This document shows, in pieces, positions 4,610 through 60,545 of a stretch of 64,000 nucleotides of DNA (position 1 is its first letter; every line of letters starts with the position of its first letter). Where the stretch lies: assembly GCA_002269645.1 (NCBI GenBank), contig NIVC01003976.1, positions 2,949 through 66,948 of the forward strand, read 5' to 3'. This DNA comes from Macrostomum lignano. Taxonomy: Eukaryota. The notes below the pieces were generated by a model. That model was not told the DNA's origin. It made no database searches and saw nothing but the letters and a program-made list of their open reading frames with translations. A program made the translations under genes and the position numbers.

Positions 4610-4971
<362 letters not shown>

Positions 4972-12800: not shown

Positions 12801-13790
12801 CGGCGCTAAACTCTCGTCTGAGAGAGTGTTTAATCGGCGCTAAACTCTCGTCTGAGAGTGTGTTTAATCGGCGCTAAACTCTCGTCTGAGAGAGTGTTTA
12901 ATCGGCGCTAAACTCTCGTCTGAGAGTGTGTTTAATCGGCGCTAAACTCTCGTCTGAGAGAGTGTTTAATCGGCGCTAAACTCTCGTCTGAGAGTGTGTT
13001 TAATCGGCGCTAAACTCTGTCTGAGAGAGTGTTTAATCGGCGCTAAACTCTCGTCTGAGAGAGTGTTTAATCGGCGCTAAACTCTCGTCTGAGAGAGTGT
13101 TTAATCGGCGCTAAACTCTCGTCTGAGAGAGTGTTTAATCGGCGCTAAACTCTCGTCTGAGAGTGTGTTTAATCGGCGCTAAACTCTCGTCTGAGAGAGT
13201 GTTTAATCGGCGCTAAACTCTGTCTGAGAGAGTGTTTAATCGGCGCTAAACTCTCGTCTGAGAGAGTGTTTAATCGGCGCTAAACTCTCGTCTGAGAGAG
13301 TGTTTAATCGGCGCTAAACTCTGTCTGAGAGAGTGTTTAATCGGCGCTAAACTCTCGTCTGAGAGAGTGTTTAATCGGCGCTAAACTCTGTCTGAGAGAG
13401 TGTTTAATCGGCGCTAAACTCTGTCTGAGAGAGTGTTTAATCGGCGCTAAACTCTCGTCTGAGAGAGTGTTTAATCGGCGCTAAACTCTCGTCTGAGAGA
13501 GTGTTTAATCGGCGCTAAACTCTGTCTGAGAGAGTGTTTAATCGGCGCTAAACTCTCGTCTGAGAGAGTGTTTAATCGGCGCTAAACTCTCGTCTGAGAG
13601 TGTGTTTAATCGGCGCTAAACTCTCGTCTGAGAGAGTGTTTAATCGGCGCTAAACTCTGTCTGAGAGAGTGTTTAATCGGCGCTAAACTCTCGTCTGAGA
13701 GAGTGTTTAATCGGCGCTAAACTCTCGTCTGAGAGAGTGTTTAATCGGCGCTAAACTCTGTCTGAGAGAGTGTTTAATCGGCGCTAAACT
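9825..13790. repeat. ~4-kb satellite of 32-34 bp units AATCGGCGCTAAACTCTCGTCTGAGAGTGTGTTT
   Basis: More than 100 near-identical head-to-tail units, each with an ACTCTC-N4-GAGAGT palindrome. No spacers. Confidence 0.98.
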
Positions 13791-24909: not shown

Positions 24910-25870
24910 CTAGCAATCTACGCCCCCCGTTGGGGAGCCAAAGAAATGCAAGACACGTTTTTTTAATAAGCTACATGTATCCTTGAAATCTTAAAAAATC
25001 TCCTGTCAAACCTTGTAAGCCTTGACATGTCAGTAATTCCCCCCACAAGCTTTAAAATATCAACTCCCCCCCTTGACATCTCAGCAATGCCCCCAATAAG
25101 CCTTGGAACCCAAAAAAATCAACCTTAACCCAAGCCTAACCCTAACCCTAACCTAACCCTAAAGCATTGAAATTTCAGTAATAATTCTCTCTAAGAGTCA
25201 TTATAGCACTACTACAGCATTATAGCGATTCCCTGCAAGCCTCGACATCGTAGGGATTCCCAAATGAATCTCTTAACTTCGACATGAAGCTTCTTTTATT
25301 TTTTACATTACGCTTTTTTTTATCAGCGATCCCTCCCCTGAGGAGGCAGCAAATAATGTAATAAAATTTTTTTCAATAAACTACATGTAGCTTCTGACTT
25401 TAGCCTTGAAATCTCATTTATACCCCCGTGAGCCTTGACATCTCAGCTATTCCCCCCGTAAGCCTTAACATGTCAGCGATGGCCCCCATAAACCTAGCAA
25501 TTCCCAAATGAATCTTTTAACTTCGACATGACTTTTCTTTTATGTATACGTAGTGCTACTTTTATTTTCTACATGACTTTTCTTCTATCAGCGCCCCCCG
25601 TGGCGAGCCAACAAAGAATGCAATAAAAAATTGAGTAAAGTACATGAACTTTGAAGTAGCTTCTGACTTTTGCTTTGACATCACAGAAACCCCCCCCCCG
25701 TAATCTCAGTTATTCTCTGAGAGCCTTGACGTCTCAGTTTTTCTCCCCAGCACAGCATTATGGCTGCATTTAATTTTTACATGACACCTTTCATGTCTGA
25801 CATGATGCTTCTTTTATTCTACCATGATGCTTCTTAATTTTTTTAATGACACTTTCATTAGTTTTTAAAT
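24910..25870 (-). mobile_element. Helitron-like 3' terminus followed by three diverged tandem units
   Basis: Minus strand CCCC-AAC-GGGG hairpin then TAGATTGCTAG|T. Related unit starts at about 24920, 25322 and 25588 share AGCCTTGACAT motifs; the first two units also end in TTCCCAAATGAATC..AACTTCGACATGA. Confidence 0.45.
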
Positions 25871-27432
25871 AAGGCTTCTATGATTTTTTCTTGACGCTTC
25901 TATGATTTTTTACATGACGCTTCTATGATTGTTTACATGACGCCTCTATGATTGTTTACATGACGCTTCTATGACATTTTACATGACGCTTCTACGATTT
26001 TTTACATGACGCTTCTATGATTGTTTACATGACGCTCCTATGATTTTTTTACATGACGCTTCTATGATTTTTTACATGACGCTTCTATGATTTTTTACAT
26101 GACGCTTCTATGATTTTTTTGCATGACGCTTCTATGATTTTTTACATAACGCTTCTATGATTTGTACATGACGCTTCTATGATTGTTTACATGACGCTTC
26201 TATGATATTTTACATGACGCTTCTACGATTTTTTACATGACGCTTCTATGACTGTTTACATGACGCTCCTATGATTTTTTAAATGACGCTTCTATGATTG
26301 TTTACATGACGCTTCTATGATTTTTTAAATGAAGCTTCTATGACATTTTACATGACGCTTCTATGATTGTTTACATGACGCTTCTATGATTTTTTACATG
26401 ACGCTTCTATGATTGTTATATGACGCTTCTACGATTTTTTACATGACGCTTTTATGATTGTTTACATGACGCTTCTATGACATTTTACATGACGCTTCTA
26501 CGATTTTTTACATGACGCTTGTATGATTTTTACATGACGCCTCTATGATTGTTTACATGACGCTTCTATGATTTTTTACATGACGCTTCTATGATTGTTA
26601 TATGACGCTTCTACGATTTTTTACATGACGCTTTTATGATTGTTTACATGACGCTCCTATGATTTTTTTACATGACGCTTCTATGATTTTTTACATGACG
26701 CTTGTATGATTTTTACATGACGCCTCTATGATTGTTTACATGACGCTTCTATGACATTTTACATGACGCTTCTACGATTTTTTACATGACGCTTCTATGA
26801 TTGTTTACATGACGCTTCTATGATTTGTACACGACGCTTCTATGATTGTTTACATGACGCTTCTATGATATTTTACATGACGCTTCTACGATTTTTTACA
26901 TGACGCTTCTATGATTGTTTACATGACGCTCCTATGATTTTTTACATGACGCTTCTATGATTTTTTTCATGACGCTTCTATGATTGTTTACATGACGCTT
27001 CTATTATTTTTTACATGACGCTTCTATGACTTTTCATGGCGCTTCTATGATTTTTTACATGACGCTTCTATGATTGTTATATGACGCTTTTATGATTTTT
27101 TACATGACGCTTCTATGATTGTTTACATGACGCTTCTCTGATTTTTTACATGACGCTTCTATAATTTTTTACATGACGCTTCTATGATTGTTTAAATGAC
27201 GCTTCTCTGATTGTTTACATGACGCTTCTATGATTTTTATATGACGCTTCTATGATTGTTTACATGACGCTTCTATGATTGTTTACATGACGCTTCTATG
27301 ATTTTTTACATGACGCTTCTATGATTGTTTACATGACGCTTCTATGATTTTTTACATGACGCATCTATGATTTTTATATGACGCTACTATGATTTTTTAT
27401 ATGACGCTTCTATGATTTTTACATGACGCTTC
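25870..27432. repeat. 23-24 bp minisatellite ACATGACGCTTCTATGATTGTTT
   Basis: About 65 units. Confidence 0.97.
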
Positions 27433-27494
27433 TTTTTAAAAAGTCTTTTAGTTTTCCTGACGTTGAAAAGCTTTAATTAAAAAAATTATACTCT

Positions 27495-29337: not shown

Positions 29338-30599
29338 AACTACGCACAGCTTCGTGTTAAAAGGCACAGATAAAAATATTGAACTAATTGAATCAATTCA
29401 TTGCGCAACCGATTTCACAGTCAGTCAGTATCAGCCTCAGGTAAAGTTAACAAAAACATTGCGCAATCTAAATCAACCCTCCAATACACAGCAGCAGTGA
29501 GAAGTTGAACCCTCCCCCCAACAATCTTTGCAGATTAAAGTACAATCTTTGCAGAAAGTTAAAAGTATGGAAATAGTTTTTCAAATGCGGTGCTTTTTCT
29601 TTTCATATTTAAAGCAAACAACTTATATCCCCGAACTCAGCGTTGCAAGATCTTGCCAGCAATATAAGTTTCTCCTCTCAAAGTTTAAAACTCGAGGAAC
29701 AGTTAGCGTTTGAAACTGTCTGATTTATAGCATTGAAGTATCGAGTGTACGTTCACTGCCTGCTTGCAAGATGATGCATTGAATTTCAATGTCCAACAAA
29801 TACACAGGACTGCCCATTGAAAGGCAGGAAAACTTATCAGTAGCCATATCATTGCGCAATTATCTATAAAGTCAGCCAGTGAGCCAGGGTTGACAAATTG
29901 AAATCAAGAAATTTTCTATGACAAATTGCTCTGATGCAGTTGAGATTTCGGAACAGAAAATTATACCATTCTGTTCAGTTTTTCAAACTCTTTCCAACGG
30001 TGTGATTCACTTTTCTGTAGCTTGAAAATTAAAAGCAGAAATTAAGGTGCAAGTTTTCCCGTTTCTTACTTGCAGAGCGCAATGTACACTCTGTGATGAG
30101 TTAAAAAAATCAAGCCATCCATTCTCGCGCAGTGTGCACCTCCACCCCTTTTTAACACTGAGCAAGTAGGCCGCCAATTCTCAAGTGCCGGCGACCCTCC
30201 CCCAGCTGAAATGAAATACACTGCAGAGATAGGAGAAAAGTTGTGGCGCAACCATACAAAATAGCGTCAAGTGGGAAGTCCATGGAATGCGATATATAGA
30301 CATCTGGTCTGGCTGTCTGGTTTGTGCTGTTTTCTGCTTTTTTGAAGCACTTAAAATTGAAATTTGAAAATGAATTTTAAATTGTAGCATCGTCGGGACA
30401 TTTGACATGTTTTGGTACCGGTTTGAAAGTTGAGTTGCAAGAATCCTAGGAGGAGATCGTCGACAAACCCGGCCCACCGGCCCACCCTACCACCGGACCA
30501 CGACGTCAGCTTTAGTATATAGAGGATTTAGGTGTTCAAACAAATTAAACAATAATGCAGGGCTGCAGCATGATAGGGACATTCGTGGAACTCGTGGAA

Positions 30600-31337
30600 T
30601 TCGCTGAACACTTCGGACACGACCCACAGCGTTGACTCGTAGAAGGCGTCGGCCTTTTGTCTGGACTGCAGCCGTCGCAGGACGCGGTCTCCTGGCCGAA
30701 TGTCGTGGTCTGCTGCCTTGGCCCCTTGGTCGGCGTAGCGCTTCATCTTCTTCTTGGGCTGCTGATCCTTGTCCTTAGTGGCTGCTCTCGTCACGTCCAC
30801 CGGCTGCGAGTGCTGGAGGTTGGGGATCGTGTCGATGATCTGCCGCCCGAACAGGAGGCTGGCGGGCGCGATCCCAGTAGCGCTGTGCGGAATGCGTCTG
30901 TACGCAGCCAGGTACTCGTCGATCGCTGCCGTCCAGTCCCTGCCTTCGGCCACGGCCGCACGGATGGCCTTGTTGAGCCCCTGGTTGCACCTTTCCGTAG
31001 CGCCGTTGGCCTGTGGGTACAGCGGAGTGATCCGGTGGTGCCTGGCGCCTTGGTCCGCCAGGAAGCTGCTGAACTCGGCCGACGCGAAGGGCGGGCCGTT
31101 GTCGGTCGTCACTTTCATCGGCTGCCCAAAGATGCTGAACCAATTCCGCAGCACGTGGACCAGTGGGAAGCGCGAGAAGTGGCCCGTGCAGACAAACAGC
31201 GACTTGCCGTTGACGGGCCCGAGAAAGTCCATGCCGAGCTCCAGCCAGGGCGCCGCCGGTAGTTCGGTCGGCTTGAGCGGCGTCGCCTTCGGCGTGGTCT
31301 CACGGGTGCAAATCTGGCAGCTTAGGCAAGCCGCCAC
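30600..31337 (-). pseudogene. Gypsy integrase core (rve), truncated
   Basis: ORF 30528-31337 with D..D..E motifs. The C-terminus is replaced by unrelated sequence. Confidence 0.88.
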
Positions 31338-32094
31338 GTGCGCCTCTACCGATGCTGGGCCAACAGCAGACCTTGGCTTGCAGGCGATCCAGCGTCTTTC
31401 TGATGCCCTGGTGGCCTTGGTGCGCCAGCTGCAGGCACCGGTAGCGCAGTGCTGTAGGCATGAAGATCTGGCCCAGACGCAGCAGCAGGCCGTCGAGCTC
31501 GGACAACTCGTGAGCGACGCCGTGCAGCCCCTTCAGGTTCGGGTTGCTCTTGTCCCAGCGATGACAGCGGATGCCGTGAAGCGTAGCTTGGACTGTAGCA
31601 TCTTGGTCGGAGGTCGCTTTGATGGTCACCAGGCTGATGGACATCGGCGTTGCCGCTTGGACTGCCGTGGCCACGTAGATGACGTCTTCTGTTCACCAAC
31701 GTTGTTGGGCGGCATCGACAGCGGCTGGCGGCTCAAAACGTAGAACGGGTTGTTGGCGCCGGGCTGGTACACCATCTGGAACACGAGGTCTTGCAGCCGC
31801 AGTCCCATTCGCTCGATCCGTGGCGGTGGCCGTGATCCCGGCTGAACAGCGAGAACAGCGGCTTGTGGTCTGTGATGACCTTGAACTGTCCGCCGCCGCT
31901 GAGGTAGAGATAGAATTTCAGTCCGCCGTACTTCACCGCCAGGGCCTCACGCTCCGTTCCATCTGGGAGTTGCGCTGCTCCGTCGGGCTCAGGCTGCGGC
32001 TGGCGTAGACCACCGGCCGTGTCGATCTGTCCGGCTGCACCTGGGCTAGGATGGCGCCGACGCCGGTCGGGCTGGCGTCTACGATCAGCTGGGT

Positions 32095-32731
32095 CTACAG
32101 TTCGCTGTTGAAGAATGTCAGCGCCTGGCTGCTGGAGATCGTGCGCTTGATGTCGTTGAAGGCGGCTTCCTGCTGCTCGCCCCATGTCCACTCGGTGGCT
32201 CGCTTCGTCACCTCCCGCAACAGCTGGTGGGCCTTATCGGACAGGTTGCTGATGAAGCGGGCCACGAAGGTGACGAGGCCCAGGAAGGAGCGGACCTCGG
32301 ACGCGTTGGTCGGCCGCTTGAAGTTGCGGATGGCCTCCACCTTCTCCTTGCTCGGGTGGATGCCGGCGGCCGTGAGTCGCATGGCGAGGAAGTTGCCCTC
32401 CCGCTGGGCGAACCGACACTTCTTGGCGTTCAGTGTGATTTTGTTCTCCTTTGGCCGAGCCAGACAGTCTCGAAGACGCTGATTGTGCTCCTTGATGTCC
32501 TTCGTGTACACCAGGATGTCGTCATACATCCACTTTACGCCCGGGAGGCCGTTCAGGACGGAGGTCGTCACCCGCTGCAGGATCTCCGAGGCGGACATGT
32601 ACCGATGGGCGTGGAGAACATCAGCAGGTCCCTGGACTCTTTGGCGACTTCAATTTGATTGAAGACTTTGGCGACGTCGAGCTCTGAGAAGTACACAGAC
32701 CCGGCCATCACGTCCCTCACCTCCTCCGCCA
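32095..32731 (-). pseudogene. Gypsy reverse transcriptase fragment
   Basis: YDD (YxDD) motif in ORF 32095-32598 and an upstream LD motif in another frame. Confidence 0.88.
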
Positions 32732-38786: not shown

Positions 38787-39034
38787 CTGTGGATTTTAAT
38801 AGTTAAATTTAAGCCCCAGTGTGACTGTAATGGGGGTAGAAAATGTTTATTGATGGGGCAATAAATTAAGTAATTAAGTAATTAATACGAATCAATAGCC
38901 TACAATAGTTGAGACAGTTTTAGCCAATGCATGTAACAGGTTTTCTTGTTGATTAAACTGGTTTATTTTATGATTCGAATTCACCACCAAGCGATTCTAA
39001 ACCACCCCTTTATAGATTCTATCAACTTAGCTAT

Positions 39035-39600
39035 AGATTCCACCTGCGAGTCCATAGATCAACCTACCTGTCTACAGATCCACCTACCTGTCTAAAGATC
39101 CACCTACCTATCTATGGATCCACCAACTGTCTATAGATCCACCTACCTGTCTACAGATCCTTCTACCTGTCTATAGATCCTATCAACTTAGCTATAGATT
39201 CCACCCGCGAGTCTATAGCTCGTAGATCCACCTAACCTGTCTATAGATCCACCTACCTGTCTATAGATCAACCTACCTGTCTATAGATCCACCTACCTGT
39301 CTACAGATCCTTCTACCTGTCTATAGATCCTATCAACTTAGCTATAGATTCCACCCGCGAGTCTATAGCTCGTAGATCCACCTAACCTGTCTATAGATCC
39401 ACCTACCTGTCTATAGATCAACCTACCTGTCTATAGATCCACCTACCTGTCTATAGATCAACCTACCTATCTATAGATTCACCAACTGTCTATAGATCCA
39501 CCTACCTGTCTATAGATCCACCTACATGTCTATAGATTCGCCTACCTGTCTATAATCTACCCACCTACCTGTCTATAGATCCACCTACCTGTCTATAAAT
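39035..39600. repeat. 20-bp minisatellite TATAGATCCACCTACCTGTC
   Basis: About 25 units with an internal block duplication. Confidence 0.93.
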
Positions 39601-42094: not shown

Positions 42095-42133
42095 ATGCCA
42101 CTGGATCCAAAGTACAGCAGCCTTCCATATATT
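42095..42133 (+). CDS. DCTN2: Dynactin subunit 2 (p50 dynamitin), exon 1
   Basis: MPLDPKYSSLPYI|gtaagt matches the dynamitin N-terminus (MADPKYADLPGI). Confidence 0.85.
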
Positions 42134-42291
42134 GTAAGTTGCATTTTTTAATTTAATTTTGTTCACGCCTAAACTTTTAAGTGGTACTGTGGTGGTAGTA
42201 TTATAGTATAAAGCAGACAAACATCGCTAGAGTTTTAGTATATTATAGTATAAGACACACACACAGACAGACAGAGTTTTGATTTTTAAAT

Positions 42292-43801
42292 GGGCATTTC
42301 CGCCAAATAGGGACACAAATTGTGTCCGAGTGTGCAAAGAAGAAGAAAAATGTTGAAAACAGGAAATCTAACTAGAATTTGTTATTAAATTTCTTTTTTT
42401 ATCTTGTAGAAGCACAAGAAATTTTCTGGTAACAATAAAAGTTGCCGATAAAAGTTATACTGATCTAAGAAGACGATTAATACCGTAGGAGAATAAAATT
42501 TTATATTGAGGCATAATTGCTTGCTTATAATTAACTTTCTTTCAGTCAATAATTTTTTAATTGTTTCTTAATGCTTTTAATCAACTTTTTAATTCCGATT
42601 TTGTTATTTTTGCGCATAAGTTCATACAATATTTTTTAACTTTGTCAAAATGTTTTTTTCTGCGCGATATACCGAATGTAAATCTCTAATTTTACTTTTC
42701 AGTAACTAGCCGATCACCGTAATTATTCAGAAGTTCCAGTGCAACTTTGCAAGCAGCAAGAAATGCATATGCTTCCACAATCTAGAGAAAATTTTTCTGA
42801 AGCAATATTACAAGTAAATGTGGGGAAAATTGATTTAATACTATGTAAATTACTATCTACATACTATAGTGCAAAATGTAAATTACATTTTTATTGATAA
42901 ATAAACAAGAAATTAATGTGAAACTGTTTTATTTTCCAGCTTTTATACCTAATGATAGTCTTGTAAGACTGATTTTGAGAAAAAAACTAGCAAAAAATAA
43001 AATAAAGGGTACAACATGAAAATACATCTCGTGTAAGTAGTGTGCTTACTACATTTAAATGTTAATATTTAAGGTATTTTGACAGATTAAGGTTCAGCAG
43101 ACCACTTTTTGTGAAGCTCTGTATGTCAGCAATCCATAAATATATCGTTTTCAGCTGATAAAAAGCACTAAAAAAATTATTGGGTGCAACATGAGTACAA
43201 TCTTGTGGTTAAGATGTCACATCGAAAAAAAATTAATGTCTTAGAAAAATGTATTAAGCAAATTCTATTGCTAAAAAATATATTGATACATCATCGCAAA
43301 GATGTTTTCCTTCATTTAAGCTAAAAAACGTGAAGATTGAAAGCCTTATGAGTAAATGAGAGGGTACAACATGAGTACAAATGATGCAAAAACTTACCGT
43401 TTATACTTTTTGGTATAGCAAGAAAACTGACAAAAATCAATGACTTCTTCTTGCAGGTTTTGTGACGAAAAGGAATGATTTTAACAAAGTTTAATGTGTT
43501 TTTTTCATGAAACAAAGAGAATTACTATAAAGAATGTTTTCTTCGCTCTTTTATTCAATGTTGAAGTTAAAAATTGTGTGTTTGGACATCCAAAAAAGTG
43601 GCGTCTACATAAGTTTAAAATGGTTTTTCAACATTAATTTTGCCGATTAACAATCTTTAAATAGCTTTAAATTGAGCAAAAGTGGTTGTATTTTTCAGTT
43701 TAAGTCCTTGTTTGACTTCAATTAGCTGGCTTAAGCTACAATTCATCATTTTGTTTGTTGAAGTGTAATTTTCCGATAGTGCCTAATTGGCGGAAATGCC
43801 C
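42292..43801. mobile_element. Non-autonomous Sola1-type DNA transposon (1.51 kb)
   Basis: TIR GGGCATTTCCGCCAA at 42292-42306 and its reverse complement at 43787-43801 (19/20 over 20 bp). AAAT duplicated on both sides, matching the AWWT TSD described for Sola1. AT-rich non-coding interior. Confidence 0.75.
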
Positions 43802-46800
43802 AAATGTATAGATAGGCCTAGATATTAAATACCAGTATATTAAACAGCACAAATAAGTACATTTATTGTAGTGAATATGGTTTTGAGTTAGTATCACTCT
43901 TTAATTCATTGATGGGTTTTCTATGTAGGCCTAGTGAAACTTAACAAATATTGACTGCACCTTTAAACTGTTTATAAGATGCAATTGTGCACCTTGTCTC
44001 TAGTGAAAAAAAGCCTTTTTTATAGTGTTCCGCCGTAAGGAGGGTCCATGTACCATAGCTGTAGCCGTAAGCAAAACTACGGCTTATTCCAATTCTCCAT
44101 ATCCGTAGCCGTAGGGACCCCGAAATTACCATATTCCCGTAGTTCCCATAGCCATAGCCGTAGTTTTAACAAAAGTGCTTAAACAACTGCAAATTAAATT
44201 AGAAAATAAAAGAAACACTCGATTGCCTTTGTAAGATTATATTTCGTCTTTTTTCAGAGCAACAATACTTGATCGTTACTGAAAGTACTAACGCTAAATT
44301 TTTTCACATTAATAAAAATTAGAGTTTGCTAGTGTTTTATTGTACTTTTTTAGGTATATTTTATAAGTTTCTAGGTTGATAATACAGTTTACTAAACGTA
44401 TATTTGTTTTACTCTACCTGTTTCTAAAAATTTTTTAATTTTTAACATTAATAACTACGGCTATGGGAACGGTTAAAGTCAAAACTGGGGAGTCAGAAAA
44501 TGTAGAAAAAAATTTGTTGTTTCAATTAGTAATTTCTTTTTACAATTTTTTATATCTCGGTGAAGTGGTCTCGAAAAACATTTTTAAAGCACAAAATATA
44601 CCCCTTGTTAAGTTTCCTACCAATTTGTTAATTTTAACTCTTACGGAACTGTACGGACGTAGAATTAGAAACTAAATATAATATTCAACAATTAAATGTT
44701 TTATACTAATGCATAAAACTAATTTTTTGTTCAATAAATATTGCAATAAATGCTTTTTAAAGTAAATATTTAGTTGGATTTTGTTAAACTGCTTAATTTG
44801 TTTACTTCGCGCCTGTTTGTGTTCTGAAATACTCTCGTTTTTTAGCTTACGAACAAATAGGCAAACGACAATGATGTATAAATAATTTTACTGAATGGAT
44901 GGAATGACACGCTACGTATAGGTGTAGGTGTCCTTAAGTTGGTTATAAAATTGCTTCATCCATGCTGTAATTTATATTGGTAGTCTAGTTCAGATTAATA
45001 TTTTATTATCCATGTCCCATTTGATTTGCCCATGTCAATAATTTTTTTGCTAATGACGTAGTAATGAGACATGTAGTGTAAATACGAATTCGTAAAGCTT
45101 AGAATTACTTTGAAATTGAGACATGTTTTTATAGCCATAGTCCATAGACTATTCATATTATCAACTAATACTGAACTGCTTACTATAGCCCATAGGCATA
45201 ACTATGCACTCGCACTTGTAAATATACCCCATGTATAGCTAAATAATTAATAAGTAGCAGGTAAAACAATTAATAACTTTTTTTATTTTTTTTAACTTTC
45301 AAACTTTGTATATTAAAATGTAAATAGAATATAAAAAGTGGCTTGGAATATTTTGAAAAAGATTAATATATTTTCATTCATGATATATTACAACTAGAGT
45401 TTTAAGAACTTAGAACATAATTACAATATAAGAAGCAAAAAGTAATATCTATTCTCTTCAGAAATGCATTTGAATATAGCAATATTTCCTATTGGATAGT
45501 TTTGATCAAAAATCAGGGATTTAATGTCTACTAACAGATTTAATTTATATTGTAATCTATTTTATATTCCTAATCTGCTCTAATAGAAATTATTTAACCT
45601 TATTTAAAATGATGTTTTTCACTTTTATTCAAGCAATGCCAGGACTTCTTTGAGACTGCTCTTCATATGCCTTTCATTCTGAGCTCTAGGCCTTAGGCCT
45701 TACCTACCTAAAGCCCAATGTAAACAATGAAACTAGTGGAGTTCCTGCATGTCATCTTCACAATTGGTTGAGTGAATCAAGCACTTTATTTATGTACAAA
45801 CCTAGTCTATCCAAACAAACTGTTGCAATGTTGGCGACTCCACTTAGCAGCCCTCTTCTGCCCACAGGCCACAGCTGGTTCAGGAGGTGCTGCGCAGCTT
45901 ACTTTTGGATTATGGCACCGCGAATTCTGGTGGCTATGTGGCCTACATTTTCGCACATACCACGAGGCGCACCTTTTTCTTTTTAAGGACCTTATGTTTG
46001 TCAGCGTGCTATTGTGTAGGCCTATTGTGTAGGCCTGAGATATACCGAAAATATTGCTTTGAATTTAAGTTAATTGATCTGCTTCAGGACTTTAATACTT
46101 GTGCCTAAAACTTCTAAAACCTATTGTTGTTGTCTGTTCGTCTTTTTCTTTTTAAAAATTAAAAGGCCTTAAAAGCTTTATTTAGAGCTTTGTGAGATTC
46201 GAATTTGTCTTGAAACTTGAAACTTGAAACTGGATAGGGGCATAGCCAAATAACTTGTCTACCCTTCTTGAGACAGCCACATGGATTTTCTGTTCTGATC
46301 TGTGCGGAACTTTAAGCGCATGGTTTAAAAATGTTCACTTATGTCAAATCGGGGGTATCGGTTTACCTCGTCTTACTTTACTTACACATACATGCATACG
46401 AGTATTTAGCTTCAAAATTGATTTTGACTTGGAAGGCTATTATATCTGAGACAAATGAAAATATGGAATATTTTGGGCTTGTGCCGGGCTATCGTAGCTA
46501 TATGTTCGTTTTCTCTATTTGGTACTCGTACTCGTACACTGGCATTCTGTCTTGAGTGCTCTTTACGAGTATAGAGTTGTTTTTTATCTTCCTCTTTACT
46601 TTCCATCGTACTTTATAGTGTAGCTACAGTACGGAAGTTTTATCTCCATAGGTTGTGTCGTTATCGTAAGGATTATATTCTGTTTCTACAATACATTTAT
46701 CGCATCGAGTACAGCCGGAGCTAAGTGTTTTTCTCGTTTTATGACATTTTCTCTCCTTGGCTTAAAAGTAATGTAAGAAGTTTAAAACTACATGTACTTT

Positions 46801-46841
46801 CCTCAACTAACACCATCGTCGCGTGTAATCGACGTCATACT

Positions 46842-47090
46842 TTACAATTCTCGAGCATTCATGCAGCTGACATCGCAGAAGAAGTTCCTTTGCCGGCTGA
46901 TGTCAGTTTGCGGAGGCAGATCGACACACTGAGAGTGCAACCAGCGCTTGCAACCATCGCACTGCACCCACTGGGCATCTGATGGCTGCAGACAGATCTC
47001 AGCATCGCATGCATTAACCTCGGCGACAGCACTCCGAGCGCCACGCCCTCTTCCACGGCCACGGCCTCGTCCATACATGGTGTTCCTGGT
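46842..47090 (-). CDS. GR-repeat linker and PHD finger (probable transposase C-terminus, out of frame by 1 base)
   Basis: GRGRGRGRG then CDAEIC..WVQCDGCKRWLHSQC..FFCDVSC, a C4HC3 PHD pattern. Confidence 0.8.
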   Translation of the reverse strand, partial: TRNTMYGRGRGRGRGRGARSAVAEVNACDAEICLQPSDAQWVQCDGCKRWLHSQCVDLPPQTDISRQRNFFCDVSCMNAREL

Positions 47091-48196
47091 AGGCATGTGC
47101 AGGTGAGTGCTCGATACTGAACCTGCAGTGGGGGGCATTTTTCGGTTCGCCATACGTGATGCATCTTGGAGATGTCCCGCATGTCGGACAACTTCAGCAT
47201 CTCCAGTATGTTGCGGAACTCCTGAATATCCCGCTCCTCAATCAACCAAGATAACACCTTTAGCGGATTGTCAGCCGATCGTATAGCCGATAGGACGTCC
47301 TGTGGCGTGATGACATTGCCTCGGCTGACAACGATTTGATCACAGCGGCGCTTAACAGCCGCGCCGACACCATCGGCAGCTCCTTTGCCATGGCCAGCCT
47401 CGGTGTACAACCATTGCCACTCAGTAATGTCAAGGTGCAGCAGTAGACGATTGAAGATATATATCATCTTCCTGCTGCGATATTGACTGGATGGTGAGTC
47501 GCTAAGCATCGACACCCGGCGAATGGGGACGCCCAGATCTTCGCACTCGTTCAGAAAAAACAGTAGTACAGGCTTGAGGTGCGCGGCAATTGCATCGGCA
47601 GTCTTAGCCTTGACGTCCGAAACAGTAATAAATGAAGTCGGCTTCCATCCACTGACGTATCCAACTCCCTGATGCAGGACTATACTGTCTTGATCGCCAA
47701 AGTGCGCTGACTGCACCTCTTTGCTGTATTTTGCCGCATAATTCTCCGAGAAGTCGACGTGCAGTAAAAGGTGGCCAGGCTGCAGCGTCAACTTGAGGAA
47801 CTTTATTGCGCGAAACTGGTTCCTAATGCGGTGAAAGTGGGAGGCAAAGGCTCGCAGTTTGCAATGAAGCAGACTGACTGCTTCCTGGCACTCTGCTATC
47901 AACTTGACCACCTCTACACCGCTGCGACCGTCCGTGCGCTGTCTCCAAGCCTCATACGTCACGCGAGGCTTCGCAGCCGCTACCTCGTTGACAACTGGCG
48001 ACTTCGTCCTGCAGTCATCACAGGCACGCATGAGGCAGGCAGGAGAATCGTCCCTGCAGACGAAGAGCTGCAGCAGATCGCGAAGGCTGGTGCAGGGTAT
48101 CAGGCGAGCAGTGTGCATAGCCTTCGCCAGATACTCCAAATTTGTGCATTGCATGCACATGCACAGCGGCCTGTCGCAGAGACGCGGCTTGACTAC
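47090..48196 (-). CDS. Sola2-like DDD transposase, catalytic exon
   Basis: CMCMQC and C..C Cys clusters, then HVDFSENY...QSAHF, MLSDSPSSQY, EAGHGKGAADGVG..VKR, KMHH, YRALTCTC. Motif pattern recalled for Sola2-type transposases. Acceptor cattacag| at 48197. Confidence 0.75.
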
Positions 48197-48452
48197 CTGT
48201 AATGAATTGAGACAAATTCGATTGAATTGGAATTGAGTCGGAGTTGTTCACCAAAGTCTCTAGATTGAAGTGTCGGTCTCATATTTTTTTAATTTATTTT
48301 TTCGTAGGAATAACATATATAGCAGCGAAGAAGTACTGTACGTAGAAATCGATTAGATTTGGGCTTTGTCAATCAAGGGAGGGTGTAAAATGATATGTTA
48401 GCTGCACAAGCTGGCACAGTTCATAGCAGTATCAGATAATTAATTAAATTTA

Positions 48453-49196
48453 CCTCGAACGGTTTCGTCTAAATGTAGAGAGGCTGATCTGGCGACGCTC
48501 AGGAAACTCGGCGAGGTACTTGCTATGCAGCGACTTCAGGGTGTCACACAAGTATCGCTTCTGCCGCTTCTCCTTTTCGCCAGTCACGCGGTCGACGCCC
48601 GTGATTGTCTCATGCTTTGCAGCACTGGCACGGGAATTTTCATCGTCATAAAAGAAGTCGACAATGTGCTGTTGTCTCTCTTTGATTCGTTTTACTGCTT
48701 GCCTTTTCAGAATTTTCGCTGTTGCACCAAAACACTTCAGCACTGCCTTGCGCTGTGCCCCAACTGGTGTGCTTGCCACAATGCACCGTGTCATCTTCCG
48801 GCAGATGGAAAAACGCCGTACTCTGGCAATCGCATCCTGTATTACATGCCTCGCCATTTCAGCATCTTTGTGTCGGCGCTCCGCTTTAGCTGATTGGCGC
48901 TGCTCTCTGCGCAGTTTGAGACGCAACTTGTTGATGGTCCGCTGATGACTAAAGATAGCATCGTCGTAGTGCTCAACCAACTTCCTGCGCTCTCGTAACC
49001 GGGCAGCATCAGAGCGGGAAAGTTTTGACCGTGTCGTCCTTTCTCCGGCATCTGGGGGTGGTGAACAGCCATGGTAGCGTCGATAGGCGCGCCGTCTCTC
49101 ATGCTGCAGGTAGTCAGCATAGCTGTCAAATTTTTTTTCTATGTAGCGCTGCTGCTGTTCCTGCTTCACCTGTTTCCTAGATGGCCTAAATGGCAT
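48453..49196 (-). CDS. Sola2-like transposase, N-terminal exon
   Basis: Basic/coiled N-terminus, then VDFFYDDENSR...KRQKRYLCDTLKSLH...ISLSTFRRNR, the usual pre-catalytic segment of DFSENY-type transposases. Donor AG|gtaaat. Confidence 0.7.
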
Positions 49197-52100
49197 GCTC
49201 TGAAAAGGTTAGAAAATACATATAATGAGAACGGGAATTTCAGCTCAGATATATTGGCATATTTTTTCTCTCTCCGTATTTTATGCACTACTGCTAGTAG
49301 CAGTAGCATTCTCTCCTTTCCTTTTTCTTTTCATCTTATACTTTTCCGTAATATTTTCATCTCTAGCTGTTTCTTGTTTTCTTCTTTTTCTTTCATAGCT
49401 GAAAGGTACACTGTGGAGATGGAACATTTTACTGTCAGAGAGATAATGAGTGAACGCTTTGTCTGTATTTTTTGCTGTCTTCTTGTAGATTTCAAGATAT
49501 TAAATTACGAGTATCAAGTTATTTGAGCATGATTACATAAGTTATTCTAATGTTATAATCTTCATGATGCCCCAAAATTATTGATGCTAGGTAAATCTGA
49601 TTTCAATTAAATAAACCAATGAATTTGGTTCTAAGTAAATTTAAAGTCAATCAGACCTGATTAGTTGGTGTTAGTAAGTGACGTCTCTGATTAATCTTTG
49701 ATATTCTACTATCTTTGGTGGCCTTAGACTAGAATAGCTAGTCATTAAAAATTTTAACTGACAGTCAATAAATAAATGTTTAAAGTAATTTTTACAAAAA
49801 TTAACTCAACTTATTCAGCATGAAATTTAAAGCATAATAAATATCATCAAAAATAACTAACTAAATCCTAATTCATTACAAATTGTACATTAATTGGCAA
49901 TAAAATTAAATTAGGTCCTCCCTGCTGTAAAGCAAAAAAAATGCTTCTTTATAGGGTTCTTTGCAGTGCCTTTATGAAATATCTAAGCTTTTCATTGTAC
50001 ATGCTCCACACAGTGGGCTTCCGGAGAAAAAAATCATGACAAAAACTAACATATATGACATTCAGGAGCCAACAAAGAGTGCCATTTAGTAAAGAAAAAA
50101 AATGCTTCAAGCTTGATAAGTGTGTAATAACATATTGTAATTCTAAAAGCTGGCAATTATTCATTTTGTTACAACAGACTACTGGAGAAAATCACTTTGT
50201 GCTCCCTAACTATTAAAAAGTATCTTTATATTGTTGTAGAATATTTTACAGTAGGTAATATGTAAGGGTTTTTTTTAATAAAAAAGCTTGGATTTAATGC
50301 TAAATTATTTCTAAAATAGAAAAGTGAATAATCCCATTAGATACATCAATGTAGATTAGTCTTTAACCTATTCTCATATGAGCATACATGTGGGATGTCA
50401 TAATTAATGTTAACCACCAAAACGAAGAATATTCGAACTCCAACAGGGTTTGTACAATAAAATCATTACTCATGCATGCATTTAACGCAAATTAACTTAA
50501 AACTTTCAATATCTACCTTAATTCCTACATTTTTGTAGCCCTAATTTGTAAATCATATAGACATTTTTCGCACGTGGTCAGCGTGGTTGAATTTCCGCCA
50601 AAAAAATTATCGCTGAAAAAAGGACATATTTTGTCTTTTAGAGGGGCGAAAAAGACTATTTTTTTTAATTATGGTAATATTATTTATATTTCACGGTTTA
50701 ATGGAAGATTAAACCAGTCATACTCATTAAAAAACAGATAAAACTTGGTATTACAAAGTTTGAATGGTGTAAACTCGCGATGCCCTCGTTTTGACTTTGC
50801 CCCGGAATCTACAGAATGTGACAGCAAATACCATATTTCCGTAGTCGTAGCCATAAGAGCAGCTAGCTACCGTAGGCGTATCTGTAGCTGCCGTAGGCAC
50901 CTATTTTACCATATTTGCCGTAGGATCCCGTAGCTGTAGCTACAGCTACGGCGGAACACTACTTTTTTACTTATAATGCTTTTAATTTTTTACTACAAGG
51001 CTACAATATATTTATCAATGTTTTAGGTTATGGAATTAGGGAATTGGGATCATACCACACTCATGATCATGTAGTATATGCCTATGCCCAAAAATTTGGG
51101 CATGCATTGGCCTTGCATGCCAAAATTAGGCATGCATAGTTGGTGTGCATCATATATGCGCAACTGCTGGCCAACCTGGCCAATCTGGCCACTGTAAATT
51201 GTGGTGGACCAGGGGTAAGTCGCAAAAATGCCCACCCCAAAGAATATAGACATAGTACTAATTAGATGATGAGGCACTCTTATAAGGCATCCCTTATAAG
51301 ACAGTCATAGTTACTCTTACTATTTACCCAAAATTGTGTTAATGTTGCTCTAGGGTTTCTTTCACAGGTAATTTGCATTTCTGGTCAAAAAGTAAGTTGC
51401 ATGGCCAGTGTAAACCAGGGGGGGTGCGCATGTACGGTGTGCATCACTCCTAAGAAAATAGTATGTATGTATACCTGGTGTATACTTTATAAAATCACAC
51501 TGAAGAGTTTTTGTAAAGTAGAAAAAAGATGAAAAAAGTTCATTTTCAAGTGTAAATTTCAAGCTTTCTAGTTTTTTAGCCTGTTATGAAGCACTTAAAC
51601 AAATCTTTGTGTATATTGATTTTTTGCTATAAATAATATTGCCTAAAAAGCATTAAAACTAACCAAATTATTTGCTAAAAAGGGTTCATTACACAATTTT
51701 AAAAAGGCCCCTTTTTGTCACAATGTTAAAAAGGTCATTTATGGTTGCAATACCAACATATTTTTGAGAATGGGTATGCACTCAATTTTTTTGGCGTGCA
51801 TTTGCAATTATTCAATTTCTGTTTGGGTGTGCACCCAGCATGATCCGGACTATAGGGATCATATTTTGAATACATATTAGCATAATAGATATGATTTAAT
51901 AGGGGTTTTAGTTTTTTAATAAAAGCTTGGCTAGTATTTTGTTGAACTATAAAATATAGAATATTAGTTAAAATAGAATAATTTTTGTTGTATATAATAA
52001 GGCCAAGGCTAAATGCACAATTCCCTTACTTTACCATACTCTGGAAAGCATATATCATGCCAGAAAATTCTAGTGTGCATTTGGTTTGGCCTAAAAATTG

Positions 52101-53131
52101 TGACATGTATTGGCATGCAATTGGGTATTGCATGCCAAAAGTGGCATGTTGGTGTGCTATGGTGTGGAATAGCTGGCATAGAATATGGCCTGGTGTGATA
52201 GTAGGTCATGTTTTGTTGAGACAAAAGTTTGTGAAAAGACATGGTCTTGTGAAGACAAGAGTCATACTTATTTTTATTGCAAAATGACAAGTAAATTTAA
52301 ATGTGCCAAAAAGAAATGTTGTATATTTGCATGCTATAAAATTTTTTTTAAAATGTTGAAGACTTTGCTTTTTTGAAGTGCATTTTTTAAATGTAAAAAT
52401 TTGGTTCAGAGCATTCCGGCGTGCACTCAACATGATCCAGACTATGTTTGCCTTATACTGACTATGCAACTTACTTTTTGACCAAAAAATTGACTTATTT
52501 ATCAAAGAAACATAAGAAAAAAGAAACATAATTTTGGATAAATTGCATGAGTAACTAGGATTATATTATTAAAGCTAAATATCTTGTCATCTAATTAGTA
52601 TTTTAAGTTTTAAGTTTTGCTTTTTTCAAGTAGTCATTTTTGCAACTTACATTGGCTGTGTTGTGCATATATGGGCCAAAGGGTAGTTGGGGTAGGGTTA
52701 ATTTTAGCCTTTATTTATGTGCTCTTCTCCATTACATGAGCAATTGGGATTGATCATATGCAATTTTTTGTGCTTCAAAATTGAATTCTATAAATATCTG
52801 TTGTAATATTCACAAAACAATTAGCTACTGATGTATTTAGTAATTATCCATTTAACTATACACATGAAATAGCTTATTGTCTAGTCACTGGACACAACTA
52901 TTAAACATAAACCTAAAGAAATATTTTTGTCCAAAGAGCAAAAGTCCAAGTTCCTACAGCTGAAGCATCTGAAAACTCTTTATTTTAACCTTACTTTGTC
53001 TTTAGCATTATAGCCTAGCTTTTAATATACTCGTATGAGCAATGCTATTTATTGATACCATGCAGAATTTGCATAATAAAGATGTGTCTTTTTTAGTATT
53101 TTATAGCATAAAAATTTATTTCTGTTTGCAG

Positions 53132-53200
53132 GCTACTGGCCAGCCAGATGTCTATGAGTCAGGAGATCTCCCAGAAAGTGATCAACAAAGAGACACAAAG
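53132..53200 (+). CDS. DCTN2: Dynactin subunit 2, exon 2
   Basis: ATGQPDVYESGDLPESDQ matches dynamitin EPDVYETSDLPEDDQ. Canonical splice sites. Confidence 0.93.
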
Positions 53201-53272
53201 GTAAGTATATATATTCAATGACCTAGTCATTGCCAAGCAGACATTCCATGTTAATCTCCCTTTCCCCCACAG

Positions 53273-53496: not shown

Positions 53497-53569
53497 GTGA
53501 CTACACATGTTACAGCTAGCAATCTGTGTTCACTGGTGGTGATATATCAATGCAAACAATGAATATTCA

Positions 53570-54150
53570 GGCACCAAAAATGAATCCTCAGATACCAAAA
53601 TGAATCTACAGGTGCCAAAATGAATATTCAAGTACCAAAATGAATCTTCAGGCACCGAAATAGCTCTTCAGCTACCAAACTTGATCTTCAGGTACCAAAA
53701 TGGATCTTCAGGTATCAAAATGGATCTTAGGTACCAAAATGAATATTCAAGTACCAAAATGAATCTTCAGGCACCGAAATAGCTCTTCAGCTACCAAAAT
53801 TGATCTTCAGGTACCAAAATGAATGTTCAAGTATCAAAATAAATCGTCAGGTACCAAAATGAATCTTCAGGTACCAAGTTGGATCTTCAGGTACCAAAAT
53901 AAATGCTCAGGTACCAAATTGGATCTTCAGCCACCAGAATGAATCCTTAGGTACCAAAATGGATCTTCAGGTACCAAAATGGATCTTCAGGTACCAAAGT
54001 GGATCTTCAGGTACCAAAATGGATCTTCAGGTACCAAAGTGGATCTTCAGGTACCAAAATGGATCTTCAGATACCAAAATGGATCTTCGGGTACCGAAAT
54101 AGATCTTCAGATACCAATATGGATCTTCGGGTACCGAAATGGATCTTCAG
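53570..54150. repeat. 20-bp minisatellite GGATCTTCAGGTACCAAAAT
   Basis: Fills DCTN2 intron 3. Confidence 0.95.
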
Positions 54151-54218
54151 AGTGCCAGAATGCAGTGCCTTGCACTTAATATAGGTCACCGACCTTAAAT
54201 CTATTTTTTCCAATGCAG

Positions 54219-57815: not shown

Positions 57816-58435
57816 CGAAGTCGTGGGCAGTCCAGCTTTAATACTCGTAGTTAACAACACAGAGAACATCAGTACCGTTGGTTTTGGTTAGCGAAACCGA
57901 GCAAACCAGTCTTACCCTGTGCTTGGATAGGCTAGCTTACTCATAACTCTGGTGACTGCATTTTGCATTATGTTTTTTTTCTACTCTTAAATATGCAGTC
58001 AGTTCGAATGCAGAATGACGGGCATGGAATGCTCCATACATTTTCCTACTCTCAAACATACTCGTAATAAAATATTAATCTGTTTTGTTGCGCTACTCGC
58101 TACTGAAGGAGGGGAAGTCAGTAGTAAAATTTGAGCGCGATTTTTTATTTTCTCTCTAGTTTCTCTTGGACGCGGGTTTTCGTGATTTAAAAAAAAGTTA
58201 TTAAAAGAAATTCACCATAGTTATTGTTAACGTGTATTATTGAAGCTTTATTAATTATATCTAATAAACATTATACTGACAAAATTGAACTGTTCATGTT
58301 ATATATAAATGTTAAACAGTTTTCTCTGCGTAACTATGCTTACCAGATGTTTATCTATATATGGATATATTGATATCAGCTGATCTATTATAAATAAAAG
58401 CTATGTTCTTTTTGACGTATTCTTCTCCTAAGGTC

Positions 58436-60545
58436 ATCTGAATTATCTCTGAAGTATCGTCTGAATCGTACCTGAATTGTCATCTAAATTGTACTTTTAA
58501 GTATCATCTGAATCGTCCCTGAAGTATCATCTGAATCGTGTCTGAAGTATCATCTGAATCGTCCCTGAAATATCATCTGAATCATCCCTGAAATATCATC
58601 TGAATCATCCCTGAAGTATCATCTGAATCATCCTTGAAGTATCATCTGAATAATCCCTGAAGTATCGTCTGAATAATCCCTGAAGTATCATCTGAATAAT
58701 CCCTGAAATATCATCTGAATCATCCCTGAAGTATCATCTGAATAATCCCTGAAGTATCATCTGAATAATCCCTGAAATATCATCTGAATAATCCCTGAAG
58801 TATCATCTGAATCATCCCTGAAGTATCATCTGAATCATCCTTGAAGTATCATCTGAATAATCCCTGAAGTATCATCTTAATTATCCCTGAAGTATCATCT
58901 TAATTATCCTTGAAGTATCATCTTAATTATCCTTGAAGTATCATCTTAATTATCCTTGAAGTATTATCTGAATCGTCCCTGAAGTATCATCTTAAATATC
59001 CCTGAAGTATCATCTGAATAATCCCTGAAGTATCATCTTAATTATCCCTGAAGTATCATCTTAATTATCCTTGAAGTATCATCTTAATTATCCTTGAAGT
59101 ATCATCTTAATTATCCTTGAAGTATTATCTGAATCGTCCCTAAAGTATCATCTTAAATATCCCTGAAGTATCATCTTAATCATCCTTGAAGTATCATCTT
59201 AATCATCCTTGAAGTATCATCTTAATTATGCTTGAAGTATCATCTTAATTATCCTTGAAGTATCATCTTAATCATCCTTGAAGTATCATCTTAATTATCC
59301 TTGAAGTATCATCTTAATTATCCTTGAAGTATCATCTTAATCATCCTTGAAGTATCATCTGAATAATCCCTGAAGTATCATCTGAATCATCCTTGAAGTA
59401 TCATCTGAATAATCCCTGAAGTATCATCTTAATTATCCCTGAAGTATCATCTTAATTATCCTTGAAGTATCATCTTAATTATCCTTGAAGTATCATCTTA
59501 ATTATCCTTGAAGTATTATCTGAATCGTCCCTGAAGTATCATCTTAAATATCCCTGAAGTATCATCTGAATAATCCCTGAAGTATCATCTTAATTATCCC
59601 TGAAGTATCATCTTAATTATCCTTGAAGTATCATCTTAATTATCCTTGAAGTATCATCTTAATTATCCTTGAAGTATTATCTGAATCGTCCCTGAAGTAT
59701 CATCTTAAATATCCCTGAAGTATCATCTTAATCATCCTTGAAGTATCATCTTAATCATCCTTGAAGTATCATCTTAATCATCCTTGAAGTATCATCTTAA
59801 TTATCCTTGAAGTATCATCTTAATTATCCTTGAAGTATCATCTTAATCATCCTTGAAGTATCATCTGAATAATCCTTGAAGTATCATCTGAATAATCTCT
59901 GAAGTAGCATCTTAATTATCCCTGAAGTATCATCTTAATTATCCTTGAAGTATCATCTTAATTATCCTTGAAGTATCATCTTAATTATCCTTGAAGTATT
60001 ATCTGAATCGTCCCTGAAGTATCATCTTAAATATCCCTGAAGTATCATCTGAATAATCCCTGAAGTATCATCTTAATTATCCCTGAAGTATCATCTTAAT
60101 TATCCTTGAAGTATCATCTTAATTATCCTTGAAGTATCATCTTAATTATCCTTGAAGTATTATCTGAATCGTCCCTGAAGTATCATCTTAAATATCCCTG
60201 AAGTATCATCTTAATCATCCTTGAAGTATCATCTTAATCATCCTTGAAGTATCATCTTAATTATCCTTGAAGTATCATCTTAATTATCCTTGAAGTATCA
60301 TCTTAATCATCCTTGAAGTATCATCTGAATAATCCCTGAAGTATCATCTGAATCATCCTTGAAGTATCATCTGAATAATCCCTGAAGTATCATCTGAATC
60401 ATCCTTGAAGTATCATCTGAATAATCTCTGAAGTAGCATCTTAATTATCCTTGAAGTATCATCTTAATTATCCTTGAAGTATTATCTGAATCGTTCCTTA
60501 AATATTACGAGCGTATCTCAATCAAACCTGAAGTATCATCTGAAT
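58436..60545. repeat. 23-bp satellite CCTTGAAGTATCATCTTAATTAT
   Basis: About 90 units with higher-order blocks. Confidence 0.97.

Follow-up and report, generated by a model that had tools for sequence, protein, structure and literature searches.

Retroelement integrases and RAG are well-documented cases of targeting through histone marks, and the chromodomain integrases of chromoviruses carry a C-terminal chromatin-reader module, although these are retroelement integrases and read other marks. Ordinary eukaryotic cut-and-paste transposases, to our knowledge, rarely have a canonical methyl-lysine reader covalently fused to them. Here we describe a candidate for such a fusion in Sola2 DNA transposons, found through a decayed gene copy in a 64,000-nucleotide stretch of Macrostomum lignano (assembly GCA_002269645.1, contig NIVC01003976.1, positions 2,949 to 66,948 of the forward strand; hereafter the window). 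On the minus strand of the window, a Sola2 transposase gene is followed by an arginine-glycine (RG) linker and a plant homeodomain (PHD) finger resembling the third finger (PHD3) of KDM5 demethylases. Sola2 transposons are already known and the window copy is a fossil; the reader-domain fusion is the new feature.

Several described systems share part of this design. The Transib-derived RAG1/RAG2 recombinase offers an analogy, being a DDE-type cut-and-paste system coupled to a PHD finger, that of RAG2, which reads histone H3 trimethylated at lysine 4 (H3K4me3) and directs activity to active chromatin; the RAG finger is of another PHD subtype and sits on a separate subunit, whereas here the finger is fused to the catalytic protein of a different transposase superfamily. 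The piggyBac and PiggyMac enzymes also bear a C-terminal zinc-finger module, which reportedly aids target or chromatin engagement (PMC8086355); this cysteine-rich domain differs from a canonical methyl-lysine PHD in being a cross-brace finger of divergent type with DNA or H3 as its ligand. In the NUP98-KDM5A leukaemia fusion, a preprint presents PHD3 as a portable anchor to H3K4me3-rich loci (bioRxiv 10.64898/2026.03.16.712262), although this is a somatic oncogenic human fusion and not an evolved transposon protein. Sola2 itself constitutes RNase H-like family E.12 (Majorek et al., 2014) and has a wide but patchy metazoan distribution, which the family described here shares.

Three collinear open stretches lie on the minus strand at 46842-49196 (open reading frames (ORFs) A, B and C; Table 1). 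ORF A (48450-49196) encodes 248 amino acids and is very basic; ORF B is open from 48196, has its first ATG at 48160 (ORF 46859..48160) and ends ...VQYRALTCTCLPGTPC, beyond which the sequence is out of frame; ORF C (46842-47153) is offset from ORF B by 2 nt, has an upstream ATG of its own at 47153 and reads ...MYGRGRGRGRGRGARSAVAEVNACDAEICLQPSDAQWVQCDGCKRWLHSQCVDLPPQTDISRQRNFFCDVSCMNAREL up to its stop. A reading of the letters without database searches (the sequence-only reading) had proposed a transposase core followed, in another frame, by a glycine-arginine repeat and a C4HC3 PHD finger at 46863-47009, and both the order and these coordinates proved exact. The finger, whose first and last Cys codons lie at 47007-47009 and 46863-46865, matches Pfam PF00628 at 31.6 bits (E 1.7e-7; curated cut-off 24), and its pattern is therefore not chance Cys/His spacing. 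A phmmer search against all PDB chains ranked KDM5B PHD3 first (2ma5, E 9e-7) and KDM5A PHD3 third (2kgg/2kgi/3gl6, E 1.3e-4), so that the best matches among all solved structures are those the sequence-only reading had named; plant SHL/EBS, Alfin and MLL/DIDO1/BPTF fingers ranked lower, and the RAG2 PHD was a weak match (2jwo, E 0.17). Scanning Joint Genome Institute (JGI) metagenome contigs with a back-translated PHD profile yielded 68 loci, the best of which are C-terminal PHDs of KDM5 genes; one, L019, is a full KDM5 gene (JmjN-ARID-PHD-JmjC-KDM5_C-hel-C5HC2-PLU-1) with the matching PHD at its end. The same profile found 7 candidates in a 5.8-billion-protein index, an uninformative yield, and a single-sequence AlphaFold2 (AF2) model of the window finger was too poor for a fold search (predicted local distance difference test score (pLDDT) 51.6).

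The resemblance extends to the residues that matter for histone binding. The window finger and KDM5A/KDM5B PHD3 have in common an unusual C-x4-C first pair followed by LQP (x-x-P as a pattern), a WVQCDG.C..W.H..CVG core that includes WVQCDG-C and W-x-H-x2-CV, a two-Trp groove and an H3R2-receiving Asp; the Trp before the His, noted as retained in the sequence-only reading, is present in the sequence RWLH. In KDM5A PHD3, W1625 and W1635 form the trimethyl-lysine groove and D1629 is part of the H3R2 pocket (PMC9172573). Equivalents of all three residues are kept in the window finger and in its relatives P0002 and P0005. The differences are that KDM5 carries its finger on a JmjC demethylase and not on a transposase, that the window finger has a C-x3-C last pair and one residue fewer than KDM5A between Cys3 and Cys4, and that the transposon fingers are 40-53% identical to human and invertebrate KDM5 PHD3, a level no lower than the 43% identity of the window and P0002 fingers to each other. 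Judged by sequence, the transposon PHD belongs to the KDM5 PHD3 type.

The fusion proposed from the window copy recurs in other copies of the family. With ORF B joined to ORF C as the query, 55 homologues were found among 5.8 billion proteins, the best of them (53% identical) from Macrostomum lignano and the rest from Lepidoptera, bivalves, amphioxus and metagenome contigs. P0002 (511 aa) and P0005 (388 aa) each have the core, an RG-rich linker and the PHD in one frame that ends a few residues past the last Cys, and contig L001, whose DNA encodes P0002, is a single ORF, open without a break from base 1 up to the stop behind the PHD. P0003 is cut off by the contig end within the PHD, and in L080, the contig of P0004, the RG run is followed by a stop and then by a frameshifted PHD. 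Since the architecture is in frame in P0002 and P0005, partial in P0003 and decayed in L080, it is ancestral to a small clade. RG-rich linkers stand at the equivalent place in P0001, P0003, P0004, P0005, P0007 and P0020; P0001, P0004, P0007 and P0020 have the linker alone. In an AF2 model of P0002 built from a 32-sequence alignment (pLDDT 79.5, with a confident core), linker residues 412-470 fall below pLDDT 50 and are predicted to be disordered, and the C-terminal finger folds separately. From end to end, the domain order is a basic N-terminus, a Cys-rich region, a D-D-D RNase H-like core, a CxC...CxCH motif, the disordered RG linker and the PHD. No paper linking Sola2 to a PHD finger appeared in the literature searched.

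Related proteins show variations on this arrangement. P0197 (566 aa), a member of the Sola2 family from the representative library, ends in a canonical CxxC PHD of another type (CIQCVGC...CDKCPRWFHLKC...CHVC), which suggests that Sola2 transposases gained PHD fingers more than once, independently. Another Sola2 family of M. lignano, 53% identical, is represented by L002 (NIVC01000504.1), where an intronless 703-codon ORF at 9998-12106, flanked by 18-nt terminal inverted repeats (TIRs) at 8400-8417 and 14633-14650, stops directly after the RG linker (...DFCNEP, then stop), at the point where the PHD would start. Two metagenome contigs (L041 at 4697-4864 and L054 at 3968-4849) hold ORFs of an unknown family that end in a PHD with the signature WVQCDGC..W.H..CVG...FFC and have no Sola2 core nearby; these may represent another mobile-element protein with a similar reader.

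The identity of the catalytic core was established by profile comparison. Pfam returned no hits for ORF A or ORF B, which gave the transposase label of the sequence-only reading no direct support and is explained by the absence of a Pfam model for the Sola superfamily (PMC5751038); a family hidden Markov model (HMM) searched against PDB sequences gave just a low-complexity match to huntingtin. The 4-bp target-site duplications (TSDs) of the relatives, described below, pointed to Sola. When a profile of 32 family members was aligned by hhalign to reference cores of Sola1, Sola2 and Sola3 from the supplement of Majorek et al. (2014), Sola2-1_HM matched at 99.5% (E 2.2e-22, over 127 columns), as compared to 72% for Sola1-1_AP (E 3.3e-05) and 71% for Sola3-1_HM (E 3.8e-05). 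The window core also shares the motifs DF[AS]ENY, EIQS.H, SD....QY[KR]N and W.[FY]....HG with Sola2-1_HM. By these sequence criteria, the transposase label stands and the window gene is a Sola2 transposase gene.

Foldseek comparison of the P0002 model with the PDB returned Argonaute PIWI, herpesvirus terminase nuclease, RNase H1 and RuvC (E ~1e-4), with no transposase at the top ranks, and the core as modelled has an RNase H-like fold. D176, D257, E291, H294, D300 and K307 are invariant in the 32-sequence alignment. D300, in GHGKGxxDG, is probably the third catalytic residue, because it stands at the start of the helix that follows strand beta-5 (helix 297-315 in the model) and because Sola2-1_HM lacks the nearby Glu. 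This choice agrees with the D-D-D pattern that Bao and colleagues reportedly described for Sola in 2009.

The window copy itself is, on the evidence of its reading frames, dead: it encodes no functional protein, although all three predicted catalytic Asp codons are intact. Exon 1 includes a conserved DENSRA...KQKRYL motif, aligns by tblastn to residues 1-245 of P0001 (49190..48465) and begins MPFKPTERQ..., an N-terminus also present in the intronless Macrostomum copy L002; public assemblies, queried for the exact sequence of ORF A, had no record of it. Between exons 1 and 2 lies a 257-nt segment that is missing from all relatives, L001, L002 and L080 being continuous at the same point. Splicing at its boundaries would join exon 1 (phase 2) to exon 2 (phase 0) out of frame and create an immediate stop (AGG-TAG). 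The segment has neither TIR nor TSD, which rules out a TIR-bearing insertion; it may be an intron peculiar to this lineage that later suffered a 1-nt indel, or else an insertion. At the second break, where 48160-47153 = 1007 = 3n+2, core and PHD frames rejoin if one base is added, or two are removed, near 47073-47077; the sequence-only reading had noted the one-base repair. The arithmetic is correct, and the real lesion is larger. In all six close relatives, YRxLxCxC is separated from the RG run by the motif C-x-C-x6-7-C-x-C-H-x3-W-x-P-L and a variable spacer, an interval of 40-60 residues as against about 15 in the window copy, which thus lacks some 25-40 codons, including the invariant CxCH...W motif. 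The frame break is accordingly the scar of a deletion of about 80-120 nt in which the spacer and half of a conserved zinc motif were lost, and the 257-nt segment adds a second frame fault to it.

The gene lies in the middle of a 6,939-bp insertion. A paralogous locus of the same assembly (L081) aligns contiguously to window positions 43867-44010 and then 50961-51120, and the flanks, when joined, match its empty site; 44023-50961 is therefore one insertion, bounded by perfect 15-nt TIRs and a perfect 8-bp TSD (Table 1). Enriched 7-mers mark its subterminal regions, as CCGTAGC/GCTACGG repeats on the left to about 44170 and CTACGG repeats on the right from about 50790; no other significant inverted repeat joins the two non-coding arms, which measure about 1.8 kb 5' and 2.8 kb 3' of the gene, a layout also seen in L002 and L003. 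Pfam and Rfam found no feature in the unit other than the Sola2-PHD gene, Rfam finding nothing across 43.5-51.5 kb. A reading of the unit with a 4-bp TSD was dropped, since its right TIR would then be non-terminal. Because the gene is broken while the TIRs and the TSD that enclose it are perfect, the copy must have been defective already when it was moved, in trans.

The ends of Sola2 relatives are of another kind. A lepidopteran contig of 4,615 nt ends exactly in 16-nt inverted repeats (GGGTTGTTCTTCAAAA), and the same ends flank the gene in Vanessa cardui L010, where they are bracketed by a 4-bp TSD (GCCA|...|GCCA). Contig L003 has perfect 23-nt TIRs (CAGGGTCGTTCGCAAATCTTGGG) and the Macrostomum copy L002 18-nt TIRs (GTCGTTCTCAAAATCAGG), neither with a clean TSD, and the start GGGT[CT]GTTC is common to L002, L003, L005 and L010, the family type of TIR being GGGTYGTTC...AAA; no usable termini were found at the Bombyx locus L079 or on contig L080. 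Sola2 is reported, by Bao and colleagues in 2009, to produce 4-bp duplications. A second insertion in the same host intron, 157 nt after exon 1, is a 1,510-bp non-coding element at 42292-43801 (42288-43805 with TSDs) whose 24-nt TIRs (GGGCATTTCCGCCAAAT.AGG.AC) are identical at 16/24 positions to the M. lignano Sola2 TIR of L002; its 4-bp TSD (AAAT|...|AAAT) is clean and the element is absent from L081, and canonical Sola2 transposition in M. lignano therefore gives 4 bp. The 6.9-kb unit differs from this pattern on both counts, with an 8-bp duplication and TAGTGTTCCGCCGTA ends that have only a TTCCGCC box in common with the Sola2-type TIR, and matches to a GGGTYGTTC-type Sola2 terminus across 43.5-51.5 kb are at chance level, one of them within the 257-nt intron at 48241.

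We consider the best explanation, at a probability of about 0.6, to be that the window holds a defective copy of a Sola2 lineage in which the C-terminal KDM5-PHD3-type finger most likely serves as a tether to H3K4me3. In intact copies, the finger would bind the H3 tail trimethylated at K4 through the two-Trp groove and the Asp-containing R2 pocket; thanks to the flexible RG linker, the transpososome would be anchored by the finger on nucleosomes where active genes have their 5' ends and could still reach nearby DNA; and new insertions would as a result favour open, germline-expressed chromatin. H3K4me3-guided integration of this kind is a plausible hypothesis. A bolder form of the proposal, in which a living Sola2 sub-lineage captured the H3K4me3-reading PHD3 of a host KDM5, joined it by the RG linker to its transposase and became a single-polypeptide, mark-guided enzyme integrating preferentially just downstream of active promoters, possibly with altered ends and an 8-bp in place of a 4-bp TSD, would make it the DNA-transposon counterpart of recombination guided by RAG2; this form seems to us doubtful.

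Several observations weigh against the tether. The window copy is dead, and its position therefore tells us nothing direct about its own protein. The window PHD is one residue shorter than that of KDM5A between Cys3 and Cys4, and fingers that keep both Trp residues can still vary in specificity. Searched exhaustively with phmmer, 1.84 billion representatives yielded 4,738 clusters of the family, and among the best 150 P0005 alone aligned through the PHD and P0003 part-way; the finger is thus limited to a handful of close relatives among thousands of Sola2 clusters. Intact fused ORFs were seen twice, both on short metagenome contigs, and none of the 68 PHD-matching JGI metagenome loci has a Sola2 core, so that support for the evolutionary success of the fusion is thin. 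Finally, the TAGTG ends, subterminal repeats and 8-bp TSD of the unit are unlike the GGG ends and 4-bp TSDs of Sola2 relatives; a different transposase may have placed it, and this single insertion site is therefore no evidence for PHD-guided targeting. The sequence-only reading had seen its location in the first intron of a housekeeping gene as fitting such targeting; the location is right, the gene being dynactin subunit 2, and the fit is weak given these ends and a copy moved in trans.

Who moved the unit is the closest question. The Sola2-PHD gene may be a truncated passenger in a hAT-like non-autonomous 6.9-kb element with a TAGNG terminus, in which case the insertion reflects the other transposase, a reading we rate just short of an even chance. 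It draws on the 8-bp TSD verified by the L081 empty site, the TAGTG terminus, the CTACGG arrays in place of the short plain TIRs of L002, L003 and L010, the lack of a Sola2-type terminus across the unit, and the 4-bp TSDs of canonical Sola2 insertions, one within the same intron. Elements of the hAT superfamily have 8-bp TSDs of consensus nTnnnnAn, YARNG termini, subterminal repeats and a hAT transposase; the TSD of the unit does not fit the consensus, and Pfam detects no hAT transposase or hAT dimerisation domain encoded in the unit. Moreover, the Sola2-PHD gene is the unit's sole coding capacity and stands centrally between flanks as in the autonomous L002 and L003, there is no Sola2 TIR or TSD inside it that would point to a nested insertion, and the outer TIR contains the TTCCGCC box of the 1.5-kb Sola2-type TIR. 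The shared box and the gene-in-middle layout favour instead a PHD lineage with diverged ends and cutting geometry of its own, which is possible and slightly less likely than the passenger. A separate doubt concerns function: the PHD might be genuinely fused and yet not read H3K4me3 for the choice of targets, serving instead in binding unmodified H3 or other partners, oligomerisation, DNA binding or regulation of activity, with the RG run acting in nuclear import or nucleic-acid binding. The C-terminal cysteine-rich domains of piggyBac and PiggyMac are a precedent (PMC8086355), and the Cys3-Cys4 spacing and modest identity to KDM5 PHD3 fit this alternative, but the cage Trp pair and R2-pocket Asp are kept in three copies and the nearest solved relatives are H3K4me3 binders; we think it unlikely.

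Two further alternatives would dispense with the fusion or with the decay, and both are very improbable. The PHD could be a piece of a host gene, a KDM5 pseudogene for instance, or an independent short ORF that lies downstream of a transposase pseudogene by accident, as its different frame and own ATG in the window would allow; yet core, RG linker, PHD and stop follow in frame on independent contigs and in decayed form in L080, and the PHD lies inside an insertion absent from the paralogous locus. The window copy could alternatively be functional through a programmed frameshift or a tiny intron, for which a GT...AG pair 37 nt apart at about 47081-47117 is available. Splicing there would delete the conserved YRALTCTC motif, intact relatives need no frameshift, and either device would leave the copy without the invariant CxCH...W.PL block and with exons 1 and 2 out of phase; both were rejected.

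Short repeats were noted in and around the unit. The TTCCGCC box occurs in the TIRs of both intron-1 elements (44028 and 50950; 42298 and 43789), and a 12-nt match to the TIR of the 1.5-kb element (ATTTCCGCCAAA) lies at 50591-50602, within the 6.9-kb unit and close to the right-hand terminus; together these might point to a relationship between the two kinds of ends. Of the octamer TACGAGTA/TACTCGTA, the window has 9 copies as compared to 1.15 expected, and five copies lie near the Sola2-PHD gene (46397-46571 and 49506-49513), downstream at 46397, 46523, 46529 and 46564 and upstream at 49506. These clustered octamers may act as repeated internal sites for binding or regulation.

The host gene, dynactin subunit 2 (dynamitin), lies on the plus strand; its exons are identical to M. 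lignano P0198 at 277/280 positions and the later ones match Pfam Dynamitin. Intron 1 spans 42135-53131, and the 6.9-kb unit entered it 1.9 kb downstream of the ATG, with the Sola2-PHD gene antisense to the host. L081 (assembly GCA_002269645.1) has a much shorter intron 1, and the two transposon insertions set this promoter-proximal intron apart from it; conversely, about 2.3 kb at L081 3540-5854 are missing from the window at 51120-51445, so that each copy has private insertions. Non-coding DNA of the two loci is 85-95% identical, and they are therefore diverged paralogs or homeologs, not alleles. Elsewhere in the window, interrupted minus-strand pol fragments of a long terminal repeat (LTR) retrotransposon lie at 30528-32598 (integrase core, rve, 26.8 bits, under the 32.6-bit cut-off; reverse transcriptase, RVT_1, 32 bits, just over its cut-off). 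Minisatellites are dense (9816-13791, 21478-24241, 25823-27433, 58434-60491, 53558-54162, 39031-39597 and others; for example 34 nt x 118, 24 nt x 115, 23 nt x 70 and 23 nt x 89 copies); two arrays within dynactin-2 introns differ in length from L081, and several of the long ORFs listed for the window are translations of such arrays.

Table 1. Features of the Sola2-PHD gene, of the inserted unit and of the adjoining host exons, in window coordinates.
Feature	Position	Strand	Basis or remark
Whole inserted unit, 6,939 bp	44023..50961	- (gene antisense to host)	L081 empty site
Left 8-bp TSD CTTTTTTA	44015..44022	.	sequence; single CTTATTTT at L081 empty site
Right 8-bp TSD CTTTTTTA	50962..50969	.	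sequence; L081 empty site
Left TIR TAGTGTTCCGCCGTA	44023..44037	+	15 nt, 100% complementary to right TIR
Right TIR, TACGGCGGAACACTA on + strand	50947..50961	-	15 nt
Exon 1 / ORF A, basic N-terminal region, MPFRPSRKQVKQ... to ...STFRRNRS	48454..49196	-	tblastn
Intron-like segment, 257 nt, GTAAAT...TTACAG	48197..48453	-	sequence reading
Exon 2 / ORF B, Sola2 core, 374 codons	47075..48196	-	CxC/CxxC motifs, RNase H-like domain, YRALTCTC...C
First catalytic Asp (HVDFSEN)	47753..47755	-	invariant column D176
Second catalytic Asp (LSDSPSSQYR)	47498..47500	-	invariant column D257
Nearby invariant Glu	47399-47401	-	E291; Sola2-1_HM has ATSHG at the Glu position
Third catalytic Asp, probable (GHGKGAADGVG)	47372..47374	-	invariant D300
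Frame break and deletion junction	47073..47077	-	last core-frame Cys 47075-47077 abuts RG frame
GRGRGRGRGRG linker	47040..47072	-	read from ORF C
PHD finger (KDM5 PHD3 type)	46863..47009	-	Pfam, PDB matches
PHD zinc-ligand codons	C47007, C46992, C46959, C46950, H46935, C46926, C46875, C46863	-	all eight in order
PHD cage Trp codons	46968-46970 and 46941-46943	-	roles per PMC9172573
PHD R2-pocket Asp codon	46956-46958	-	role per PMC9172573
Stop codon	46842..46844	-	six codons past last PHD Cys
Dynactin-2 exon 1, MPLDPKYSSLPYI, then GTAAGT donor	42096..42134	+	identical to P0198 N-terminus
Dynactin-2 exon 2, ATGQPDVYESGDLPESDQQRDTK	53132..53201	+	P0198

The comparison assigns 4,738 clusters of "uncharacterized proteins" from Lepidoptera, bivalves, amphioxus and flatworms to Sola2. 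If binding of H3K4me3 does bias integration in the PHD-bearing lineage, it would account for the ability of a DNA transposon to find chromatin that is safe, heritable and open, and would offer both a natural blueprint for mark-directed gene-delivery vectors and a compact core-linker-reader system in which the effect of tethering on target choice could be tested. Macrostomum lignano, in which surveys of insertion sites against chromatin maps should be practical, would be a suitable organism for such work.

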